NCBI GenBank assembly: GCA_965603825.1
Contig: CBFDEM010000002.1
Coordinates: forward strand, 62,001 to 126,000
Length of the DNA: 64,000 nucleotides
Direction of reading: 5' to 3'
DNA from: Blepharisma stoltei ATCC 30299
Lineage: Eukaryota > Protista > Ciliophora
Positions 57,009-60,170 of the stretch are shown in pieces; the first letter of the stretch is position 1; each line of letters opens with the position of its first letter. The notes beneath the pieces are model-generated. The model searched no databases and was not told where the DNA came from. It saw nothing but the letters and a program-made list of their open reading frames with translations. The translations under genes and the position numbers were made by a program.

Positions 57009-57470
57009 TTAGCAACTTAAGCAAATAATTGCATAAATGATTGCCCCAGGACTCACTCCATACTCAGCAAGGGTTTTTTCATCTTCAAGCCGTTTTCCTT
57101 CAAAAATAATAGTTCGCTCGTCAGCAGAATCACCAACTATTTCCTGATAAAGTTCTTTGATACGCTTAACAGTATCATCAGAGTTGATACTTATTTCATT
57201 GTCCACTTCAAATAAGTCCCTTAGAATAATTGTCATTAAAATGCCTCCTCTAAGACGTAAAACTAAATGCAGTGTTGATTCTTTCTGTATATTATAGTCT
57301 GCCAAAGTCCTCCCATCTTCTAATTGTTTTCCTGCAAAAATGAGCCTTTGTTGGTCTGGAGGAATTCCTTCCTTGTCTTGGATTTTAGCTTTTACGTTAT
57401 CAATGGTGTCTGAAGACTCCACATCAAGAGTTATGGTCTTTCCTGTAAGAGTTTTGACAAATATCTGCAT
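57009..57470 (-). CDS. Ubiquitin-Ubl fusion A (Ubl ends -ICLSC)
   Basis: Canonical ubiquitin to LRLRGG followed by a divergent 77-aa ubiquitin-like domain. Confidence 0.92.
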
Positions 57471-58029
57471 AATTATTAAAGGACATTTTCAATCAGAAAA
57501 GAGCAGAATTTTACAATTATAGATGCCGCTAATGATTAATGAGCAATAAAATATATCTAAATTAGACTTGCCTAGCATAAACGAAGCAAGATTCCCACTT
57601 TTATATATAGACAATTCATAGGATAGTCAAATATGGAAAACTACATCACATATCTTTTTGTTTTATATAATATATAGGATTTAAAATAAATATCATGAAC
57701 ATTTTTCCAAGATAATTTCTACTGAAAAATTAAAAAAATTATTTCTTAATAATTAATAGCGTTAAATCAGGAAAGCTAAATAGTAGTAAAAAATTTATAG
57801 GGCTTATTAATTATTAATAGCCTAAATAAGCTATTCTAAACTTCATATTTTAAGCATAAAATCCATTTTGCACCCTCGGCCCTCTGACTCCATCTATTCC
57901 ATATTTATTCTGTTATAATAAATATTTGATCAAGTGTTTATGCTTTTCAGCTTAATTTAATCTGACGTGCAACAATTTATTAATGCATCTCACATTTTAC
58001 TTCCATATCTATAATCTAATTTTATTATA

Positions 58030-58262
58030 GAAGCTTCCTTTATCCTTTAAAACTAAATACAGTGTTGATTCAAATGCAATTTTATGTTCTTTAAGTTGTC
58101 TATAATCTTCAATTAATTTTTTTCCTGAAAAAATTAGTCTTTGCATGTCTGGAGAATTTCTTCCTTGGCTTGAATTCTAGCCTTTAAATAGTCAACAGCA
58201 TTTGAAGGCTCCACATCAAAAATTGTGGTTTTATCTGCAAGGTCTCTAATAAATATTCGCAT
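58030..58262 (-). pseudogene. Frameshifted divergent ubiquitin pseudogene
   Basis: MRIFIRDLADKTTIFDVEPSNAVDYLKARIQAKEEI, 1-nt frameshift, then PDMQRLIFSGKK..ESTLYLVL; no GG; end approximate. Confidence 0.75.
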
Positions 58263-58369
58263 AATTATAAGAGATGCTAATATAAACAAATTCTTATAAT
58301 TTTTTCATTGAATTTATTTATACTGAAGTTTAAAATTAGCTGATTATTTGAATTTTTCCATCATTTTAT

Positions 58370-58834
58370 TTAGCAGCCTTTTAAGCGAAGAACCATATGC
58401 ATTATTGCCCCAGCTGTGATTCCGTATTCATTAAGCCTTTTTTCATCTTCAAGCTGTTTTCCTGCAAAAATAATTCTTTGCTGGTCGACAGGAACACCAG
58501 CTGTTTCCTGATAAATTTCTTTGAGACGCTCAACAGTGTCATCAGAGTTGACATTTATTTCATTGTCCACTCCAGTTAAGTCCCTTAGAACAACTGTAAT
58601 TAAAATGCCTCCTCTAAGACGTAAAACTAAATGCAGTGTTGATTCTTTCTGTATATTATAGTCTGCCAAAGTCCTCCCATCTTCTAATTGTTTTCCTGCA
58701 AAAATGAGCCTTTGTTGGTCTGGAGGAATTCCTTCCTTGTCTTGGATTTTAGCTTTTACGTTATCAATGGTGTCTGAAGACTCCACATCAAGAGTTATGG
58801 TCTTTCCTGTAAGAGTTTTGACAAATATCTGCAT
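58370..58834 (-). CDS. Ubiquitin-Ubl fusion C (NEDD8/RUB-like Ubl ending -LRLKGC)
   Basis: Canonical ubiquitin followed by a 78-aa Ubl ([23 protein letters not shown]). Confidence 0.92.
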
Positions 58835-59024
58835 AATTATTATAGGACATTTTTAACAGAAAAGAGCAGAATATATCCTTTTAATAAGTAATTTCCTAAA
58901 GCAAAAAATCTGATTCAATATTAGTGATTTTAAGAATTGTTTAACAGATAAAAATATATAAATTCAATTGCTAAATATTAATTATACATTTTTCATCTCA
59001 TTAAGATAAGAATTTAATTATTTA

Positions 59025-59255
59025 TTAGCATCCCCTCAAATTGATTATGAGGCTTAATGATGCTTCAGCATATATTCCATAATCTGCTAATGCAAAATCG
59101 TTACTAAGCTGTCTGCCAGCATATACCAGAACCTGTAGGTCCGGGGGAATGCCTTCTAAGTCTTGAATCTTTTCTTTAATATTTAAAGGAGAATCACTAG
59201 GCTCTGCATCAATAACTAGCGTCTTTCCAGTCAAAGTGCTTATGGATAGTTTCAT
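59025..59255 (-). CDS. Stand-alone 76-aa ubiquitin-like protein ending -NLRGC
   Basis: TLTGKT, EGIPPD, YAGRQL; aligns ungapped to ubiquitin with Cys at position 76. Confidence 0.88.
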   Translation of the reverse strand: MKLSISTLTGKTLVIDAEPSDSPLNIKEKIQDLEGIPPDLQVLVYAGRQLSNDFALADYGIYAEASLSLIINLRGC

Positions 59256-59933
59256 TTATTATTAAATTATATAAAAATGTCGGCTAAGATCAGAAATCTT
59301 ATATTATTCATATTATGTCTTACTCAATTTATAAGTCAAAAATATTTATAAAACCGAGATATTTTAGTACAATTTTTACAACCTTTATAAATAAATTAAA
59401 AATTTAAGGCAAAAAAAACGCTTGAATAGAGCATTTTAAAAATTCTAAAGAGAGGATCTTATTATAGGTAGAAGATTATTTAATTGAATAATTAAAAAGC
59501 TATAAATGATTTCCCAATGATGTTGGTGCTAAATTTTTAAAATATGGATAATAGTTGTATTAATAAAGACAAGATACATATAAAAGTGAAAACTAGAATC
59601 GTTAGATAAAACAAACTATTAAGGAAATCTTGGGCCAAATGGCCAGATACCTTCATTTTGATGTAGTTCTTAGCATCTCAACTCTCTGTGAATTTGTTTA
59701 TCAACCTATACTTTTTACAATTCGAAAACTTTCATTTATGTAGCCGCATATAATATCAATGTGTTAATATGATCGCTGGGTATTCGCACTTCTATAGCCA
59801 TTTCCAGCTCATACCTCTGACTATGTTAATCTCGCTCTATGAATCTGATCGTCAATCTAAAGACCTTTTCAGCTAAAAGGGTTGGATGCTTGTCATATAT
59901 CAGTTTATATACTAGTCTCAAATTATAACTTTA

Positions 59934-60170
59934 TTAAGCGCCTCCTCTGTTCCGTAAAATTAAGTACAGTGTTGCCTCTTTTCCTATATTAATATCTGCA
60001 ATAGTTTTCCAATCTTCTAATTGTTTTCCTGCAAAGACTAACCTTTGCTCGTCTGGAGGAATTTCTTCTTTCTCCTGAATTTTAGCCTTTAAAAAGTCAA
60101 TAGTGTATCAATGCTCCACATCTAGGGTTATGGTCTTTCCTTTTAGGGTTTTAACAAATAATTCCCACAT
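59934..60170 (-). CDS. Divergent ubiquitin-like protein ending -RNRGGA (78 aa)
   Basis: [20 protein letters not shown](W)[33 protein letters not shown]...; intact with one TGA=Trp; absent from the ORF track. Confidence 0.8.

Follow-up and report, generated by a model that had tools for sequence, protein, structure and literature searches.

What might a ubiquitin-like protein do when its last residue is cysteine, in place of the glycine through which, to our knowledge, every established ubiquitin-type modifier is activated? The question is raised by positions 57009-60170 of a 64,000-nucleotide (nt) window (the whole stretch of DNA analysed: positions 62,001 to 126,000 of contig CBFDEM010000002.1) from Blepharisma stoltei, which hold five ubiquitin-family genes arranged in tandem, all on the minus strand of this ciliate's somatic genome. 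An initial annotation had described five co-oriented ubiquitin-family loci here, including three ubiquitin-like (Ubl) domains with Cys at the end, two of them behind a canonical ubiquitin (Ub), and had offered the cluster as a candidate new modifier system whose terminal Cys is retained by selection. Its description of the genes holds: all five loci were recovered, one of them (58009) proving to be a frameshifted pseudogene, which the annotation had not said; the ends ICLSC (57009, hereafter W1), LRLKGC (58370, W2) and NLRGC (59025, W3) are each followed by TAA; W1 and W2 are Ub-Ubl fusions; and the W3 Ubl combines Cys76 with K48R, K63A and loss of R42/R72, reading V42, R48, A63 and N72. The argument for selection is strengthened by ten Cys-ended Ubls across the genome, in which the Cys is invariant and the tail before it variable, and by at least 14 such genes in other organisms. 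The Cys-ended tail looks like a ubiquitin variant new to the literature searched, and the reading that we tentatively favor, at somewhat less than an even chance, is that these proteins form a selected class of Ub-fold modules acting through the terminal thiol. They represent a recurring natural Ub-fold module with Cys at the position of an essential Gly, present in ciliates and other eukaryotes and, in some U-box and RING ligases, as the closing domain.

Both fusions start with the same canonical Ub, whose terminal LRLRGG is joined without spacer to ILMT or ILIT at the start of the second domain. That domain is a 77-residue Ubl in W1 and, in W2, a 78-residue Ubl ending VLRLKGC that keeps I44, K48, H68, V70, R72, L73 and G75; in the stand-alone W3 an IINLRGC tail places the Cys exactly at residue 76. 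The ubiquitin profile PF00240 matched both halves of each fusion (E-values 2.6e-48 and 1.1e-55) and W3 (2.4e-17). The exact 153-, 154- and 76-residue proteins are present in a public collection with NCBI/UniRef as sources, so that the Cys ends are not merely a product of our own open reading frame (ORF) calls. Proteins identical to loci of this genome carry the NCBI name Blepharisma stoltei, which agrees with the heterotrich origin that the initial annotation had implied.

To see how far this ending extends, the B. stoltei genome (41.5 Mb, 64 contigs) was searched with the W2 Ubl and PF00240, and ORFs were inspected around roughly two thirds of the matches; the census is thus partial, about one third of the weaker PF00240 matches lying outside it. 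At least ten Ub-fold ORFs, spread over six loci and five contigs, have Cys as their last residue, at ubiquitin position 76 or, for W1, position 75. Apart from the three window genes they comprise four tandem fusions on contig C27, two paralogous proteins combining a U-box, a coiled coil and two Ubls, and a two-Ubl protein. The second halves of the C27 fusions begin V/ILMTII, as in W1 and W2, and end RRVC, PLSC, RITC and RRMC; this cluster is flanked by genes for an EF-hand protein and a TB2/DP1/HVA22 protein. Among ORFs whose Ub-fold domain stops exactly at model position 76, nine of ten end in Cys and none in Ala, Ser, Asp or Val, against a background of 2 in about 170 non-Ubl ORFs of at least 150 residues (about 1%) in the DNA fetched from this genome. 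Cys endings therefore exceed chance. In an alignment of nine Cys-ended domains, 29-58% identical to that of W2, just three of the 78 columns never vary: those corresponding to K27 and G35, and that of the final Cys. Counted from His68, the tail always has nine residues, while those at positions 70-75 vary (VLRLKGC, TEGRRVC, AQTPLSC, VKRRITC, AERRRMC, VLILRGC, ILRLAGC, QMLRGC and IINLRGC). The Cys codon is TGC in nine of the ten genes and TGT in one, and the stop is TAA in nine and TAG in one. This pattern, drawn from sequence comparison, suggests that the terminal Cys is kept by selection.

The same ending recurs outside Blepharisma. Protein searches and a metagenome scan together gave at least 14 further distinct Cys-ended Ubl genes in other eukaryotes. 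Three surfaced as by-products of word-indexed protein searches: one ends LRLRGC-TGA, reads an in-frame TAG as Gln and begins MGNMLC, placing it in a ciliate with another genetic code (P0189); one ends KLRGC and follows a probable intron on a contig with a GC content of about 45% (P0196); and one ends NLRRC (P0239). A scan of JGI metagenome contigs for sequences that encode HLVLRL[R/S]GC-stop returned 17 loci, of which 15 are real Ub-fold ends from about 11 distinct genes, on contigs of 21-62% GC. In nearly all of these the Cys-ended Ubl closes a larger protein, such as a U-box protein (L101) or a RING finger protein (L097). Five of the proteins (L096, L102, L106, L097 and L100) share an architecture in which an N-terminal domain (SPS-LID-VWHE-IL-T--Y--LC) precedes one to three Ubls ending R/SGC; the domain gave only a sub-threshold, GRDP-like match (E 0.019), and the architecture occurs in standard-code eukaryotes as well as in a ciliate with TAA/TAG = Gln, the source of a three-Ubl protein (L100). 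As a control, the pattern [11 protein letters not shown]-stop, with any residue allowed at X, was run on viral contigs, where X was Gly in 100 of 100 cases. The best 150 matches of an exhaustive profile search were all multi-repeat polyubiquitin-like proteins, and an ESM Atlas search with the U-box protein returned generic ubiquitin clusters only.

Expression of the window genes was approximated with assembled contigs from four public runs of one study, whose RNA label is a guess. The contigs are confined to gene bodies and leave intergenic DNA uncovered, and their depth varies by three orders of magnitude between neighboring genes; this distribution is what RNA would give, and we infer their RNA nature from it. 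In each of the four runs, gapless contigs cover W2 between 58344 and about 58749, at a depth of 170-330. These contigs cross the Ub/Ubl junction, the stop codon and 26 nt of the 3' untranslated region (UTR), which argues that the fusion is one transcript with no splicing at its end. W3 lies under contigs spanning 59001-59244 (depth 5-21, two runs). The expression that the initial annotation had named as a check is thus seen for W2 and W3 and not for the Ubl half of W1, over which the four runs gave no RNA-like contig, a weak sign of silence given that contigs drop rare transcripts.

How do these proteins compare with known systems? The W2 Ubl, modeled by AlphaFold2 from the nine-sequence alignment, is predicted to adopt a β-grasp fold (mean pLDDT 94.1, falling to 79 over the last eight residues), with a tail that, in the model, appears flexible like that of ubiquitin. 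Foldseek matched the model to ubiquitin, NEDD8 and RUB1 at TM scores of 0.93-0.95, and the profile match and predicted fold together place the domain in the ubiquitin family (PF00240, β-grasp). It differs from ubiquitin and NEDD8 in ending with Cys rather than Gly, and without Gly-Gly. The C-terminal Gly or Gly-Gly that type-1 Ubls present for E1 adenylation, directly or once trimmed, is likewise absent from the ICLSC, RLKGC and NLRGC ends; in the array only the locus at 59934-60170 ends RGG-A. Nor do W1-W3 have the Gly-Gly that precedes a polyubiquitin-type cap, with at most one Gly before the Cys. W1 and W2 do have the layout of Ub-RUB/NEDD8 precursors, a canonical Ub directly joined to a second Ubl, with the W2 junction spanned by one contig; they share this head-to-tail build with the Ub-NEDD8/RUB fusions of plants, but their second half ends in Cys instead of Gly-Gly. 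Orthology of the second halves to NEDD8 was considered and rejected, as the W2 Ubl is 37% identical to the genome's NEDD8-like domain versus 46% to ubiquitin. The genome also encodes a separate Ub-NEDD8-like fusion (C22:9288-9743, L006), whose second half reads [13 protein letters not shown]...MRLLGG-L and which resembles the plant Ub-RUB1 precursor.

Two further systems bear on a terminal Cys. Engineered Ub-G76C is a standard tool that forms stable disulfide mimics of the thioester with the catalytic Cys of E2s and deubiquitinases (DUBs). Its substitution is identical to that of the Cys-ended Ubls, but it is a man-made reagent, and no natural counterpart or other Cys76-ended Ub-fold protein is described in the literature searched, which covers few subscription journals. 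MUB/UBL3 proteins also have a Ub fold without Gly-Gly and depend on C-terminal cysteines for function; attachment of UBL3 to its targets needs these cysteines and does not withstand reducing conditions (PMC10511055).

In the reading that we favor, DUBs would most likely cut the W1 and W2 precursors after LRLRGG, releasing ordinary ubiquitin and a Ubl of 77 or 78 residues with Ile at its N-terminus and Cys in place of Gly76. E1 enzymes act on the carboxylate of Gly76, the last residue of a slim Gly-Gly tail, so Cys76 modules are probably poor E1 substrates that escape activation in the classical way. The selected feature would be a thiol at the tip of a ubiquitin-like flexible tail, which may thread as ubiquitin's does, towards the catalytic Cys of an E1, E2, HECT ligase or DUB, or towards target cysteines, and may engage them by a reversible, redox-sensitive disulfide or thioester. 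Such engagement would resemble, by analogy, that of engineered Ub-G76C and the Cys-dependent attachment of UBL3. The Ubls released from W1, W2 and the four C27 fusions would start with Ile (four) or Val (two). In yeast and mammals an N-terminal Ile is destabilizing through the Arg/N-degron pathway, and the freed Ile-starting Ubls might accordingly be short-lived. A broader proposal, which we regard as doubtful, is that Cys76 Ub-folds form a widespread eukaryotic, E1-independent thiol branch: free Cys-Ubls would join proteins or E2/DUB sites by redox-controlled disulfide or thioester, and the tethered Cys-tail of U-box and RING ligases would be a built-in acceptor, relay or regulator for E2-bound ubiquitin. 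Were an active thiol borne out, it would imply a new thiol/redox mode of attachment or regulation of Ubls, or a natural Ub-G76C trap. In either case these are simple proteins of 76-78 residues in which a single point mutation provides the control.

Several points weigh against a selected, active thiol, and a number of them speak for a rather unlikely alternative, that these are plain non-conjugatable Ubls and decaying duplicates, in which loss of Gly76 stops activation and the Cys is an inherited GGY-to-TGY accident with an inert thiol. Much of each Cys-Ubl domain evolves almost freely. The ratio of nonsynonymous to synonymous substitution rates (dN/dS), which the initial annotation had suggested computing for the Ubl halves, gave a divided answer: 0.43-0.89 within the C27 cluster, which is weakly purifying, and 1.45 between W1 and W2 (dN 0.25, dS 0.17); in the U-box group it is 0.22-0.53, with dS saturated. 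The W1 Ubl also has a terminal branch nine times longer than that of the W2 Ubl (0.59 vs 0.065), and because of this branch, the dN/dS of 1.45 and the missing RNA-like contig, the W1 Ubl half is probably a decaying or fast-diverging duplicate, with W2 the working, conservative copy. The Ub halves of the two genes are nevertheless identical at 228 of 228 nt, other Ub genes of the genome being only 76-83% identical to them. With a dS of 0.17 in the Ubl halves, zero synonymous differences in the Ub half are very unlikely, and the Ub halves were probably homogenized by gene conversion confined to that half. The array also includes a pseudogene. Only W2 and W3 look functional in the window, and the W1 Ubl half and the 58009 locus look like decaying copies. 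Turning to the genome, the chance of an invariant last column is about 4% by column count alone, and the invariant Cys could partly reflect inheritance among paralogs of shared ancestry. A tree of 31 Ub-fold domains is star-like; it does not separate one from several origins of the Cys and is compatible with a single origin inside the genome. Many other Ubl paralogs carry assorted non-GG ends (LQLR, IKRQ, KLAS, SCHIDE). No dedicated conjugation enzymes were found among the neighboring genes inspected beside the Cys-Ubl clusters, and word-indexed protein searches with the W2 Ubl, the nine-Cys-Ubl alignment and the U-box/two-Ubl proteins, which returned mostly generic ubiquitins, contained no Stentor, Condylostoma or other Blepharisma orthologs. 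The JGI pattern fixed the Cys, and its excess over other residues is quantified within B. stoltei only. Lastly, attachment, disulfide formation and enzyme contact are inferred, and "new modifier system" should be read as a hypothesis. An inert Cys would make the cluster one more case of heavy Ubl gene turnover in Blepharisma. It sits poorly, however, with a Cys that stays while all the other tail residues have changed and tail length is constant, with the near-exclusive use of Cys at position 76 and with the recurrence of the same end in organisms and architectures unrelated to each other, where either Cys codon is used and the stop codon differs.

Other functions for the Cys seem less likely than action through the thiol. 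That it is a lipid anchor, added by S-acylation or unusual prenylation and tethering the Ubl or its E3 to a membrane, seems to us unlikely, although lipidation of a Ub-fold protein is well established for MUB/UBL3 (PMC10511055; PMC4996978). Most copies have basic residues ahead of the Cys (RLKGC, RRRMC, KRRITC, GRRVC, LRGC), and the MGNMLC start of the foreign ciliate protein resembles a myristoylation plus palmitoylation signal; the basic residues, however, are those of ubiquitin's own tail, R72 and R74. The loose CaaX box proposed in the initial annotation fits ICLSC alone: Cys stands at -4 in W1 (CLSC), the decayed-looking copy, and in none of the other nine. MUB/UBL3 proteins carry, on a longer tail, a CaaX box with another Cys close upstream, whereas the Cys-Ubls here have a single Cys as the very last residue, and the genome already encodes a genuine MUB/UBL3-type Ubl ending RRRTSCCTLL, complete with the adjacent upstream Cys. 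A single terminal Cys also falls outside the prenylation rules that we know of, except those for Rab proteins. Still less probable is a Cys that serves as a one-residue precursor cap, removed by a protease to expose Gly75 for conjugation. UFM1 and Atg8 do use a single C-terminal Gly, Gly directly precedes the Cys in six of the ten Blepharisma copies and in nearly all foreign ones, and a single residue capping Gly-Gly is a common feature of polyubiquitin, seen also in the neighboring RGG-A locus. Ubiquitin-type E1s, by contrast, require a Gly-Gly tail, and many of the proteins concerned are large E3s or have several domains, which makes conjugation of the whole protein implausible. The four paralogs that keep Cys after Val, Ser, Thr or Met (RRVC, PLSC, RITC, RRMC) would go unexplained, as they do under the related suggestion of the initial annotation that GC is a decayed GG-C tail. 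In the BUBL loci of Tetrahymena and other ciliates, a Ubl without Gly-Gly directly precedes Cys1 of a BIL (Hint) domain, giving conjugation without ATP (PMC8616854). A comparable intein chemistry, with an N-to-S acyl shift at Gly-Cys yielding an ATP-independent Ubl thioester, is highly improbable here and was rejected: the BUBL Cys is residue 1 of the Hint domain, whereas these proteins stop after it, RNA-like contigs run colinearly across the stop codon, neither PF07591 nor PF13403 detected a Hint domain anywhere in the genome, and the same four paralogs lack the Gly.

Table 1. Location of the Cys-ended Ubl genes and related loci in B. stoltei. Coordinates without a contig name are those of the window; aa, amino acids.
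Feature	Location	Strand	Basis or remark
W1, Ub-Ubl fusion, 153 aa (Cys-ended)	57009-57470	minus	ORF and translation; PF00240 matched twice
W1 Ub half	57243-57470	minus	
W1 Ubl half	57012-57242	minus	
W1 stop TAA	57009-57011	minus	
Frameshifted ubiquitin-like pseudogene	58009-58289	minus	two overlapping partial ORFs in different frames
W2, Ub-Ubl fusion, 154 aa (Cys-ended)	58370-58834	minus	ORF and translation; PF00240 matched twice
W2 Ub half	58607-58834	minus	
W2 Ubl half	58373-58606	minus	
W2 stop TAA	58370-58372	minus	
W3, stand-alone Ubl, 76 aa (Cys-ended)	59025-59255	minus	ORF and translation; PF00240
Divergent ubiquitin-like gene, 78 aa	59934-60170	minus	translation with one in-frame TGA = Trp
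Four tandem fusions, 154/155 aa (L031)	C27:183351-185951		divergent Ub-like half ending RDGG, then Cys-ended Ubl
MUB/UBL3-type gene, 84 aa	C27, ~201.9 kb (L063:1513-1767)	minus	
U-box + coiled coil + two-Ubl ligase, end RLAGC (L033, P0236)	C34		U-box confirmed by Pfam
Paralogous U-box + coiled coil + two-Ubl ligase, end ILRGC (L027)	C60:~5039-5900		U-box seen by eye, upstream
Two-Ubl protein, 272 aa, end MLRGC	C32		

The remaining features are of lesser bearing. The pseudogene has lost 1 nt near the IPPDQQ region, which breaks the frame, its tail has neither GG nor Cys, and it has no contig coverage in the four runs. The divergent gene at the far end of the array closes with RNRGG-A, a canonical Gly-Gly with a one-residue cap, and lies under contigs at 59617-60155 (depth 3-6). 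These RNA-like contigs extend about 300 nt past its stop (59617-59930) through a stretch without any ORF of at least 40 residues, which may represent either an extended 3' UTR or another transcript, on one strand or the other. The gene on C60 has a small intron inside its U-box. Ub-Ubl fusions and single Ubls form a further cluster at C35:594.4-596.7 kb (L011, L026); its second domains end SCHIDE, IKRQ, IRCNIG... and IRCILAN..., and in three of these four a Cys falls at about position 72-73, not at the terminus. Conserved positions require TGA = Trp in this genome, with ORFs ending at TAA or TAG, and a direct local sign of this code stands just outside the array at 56362-56740, where a homeodomain-like ORF on the plus strand encodes the conserved Trp of its third helix (YKWS-W-DYKKK) by TGA.

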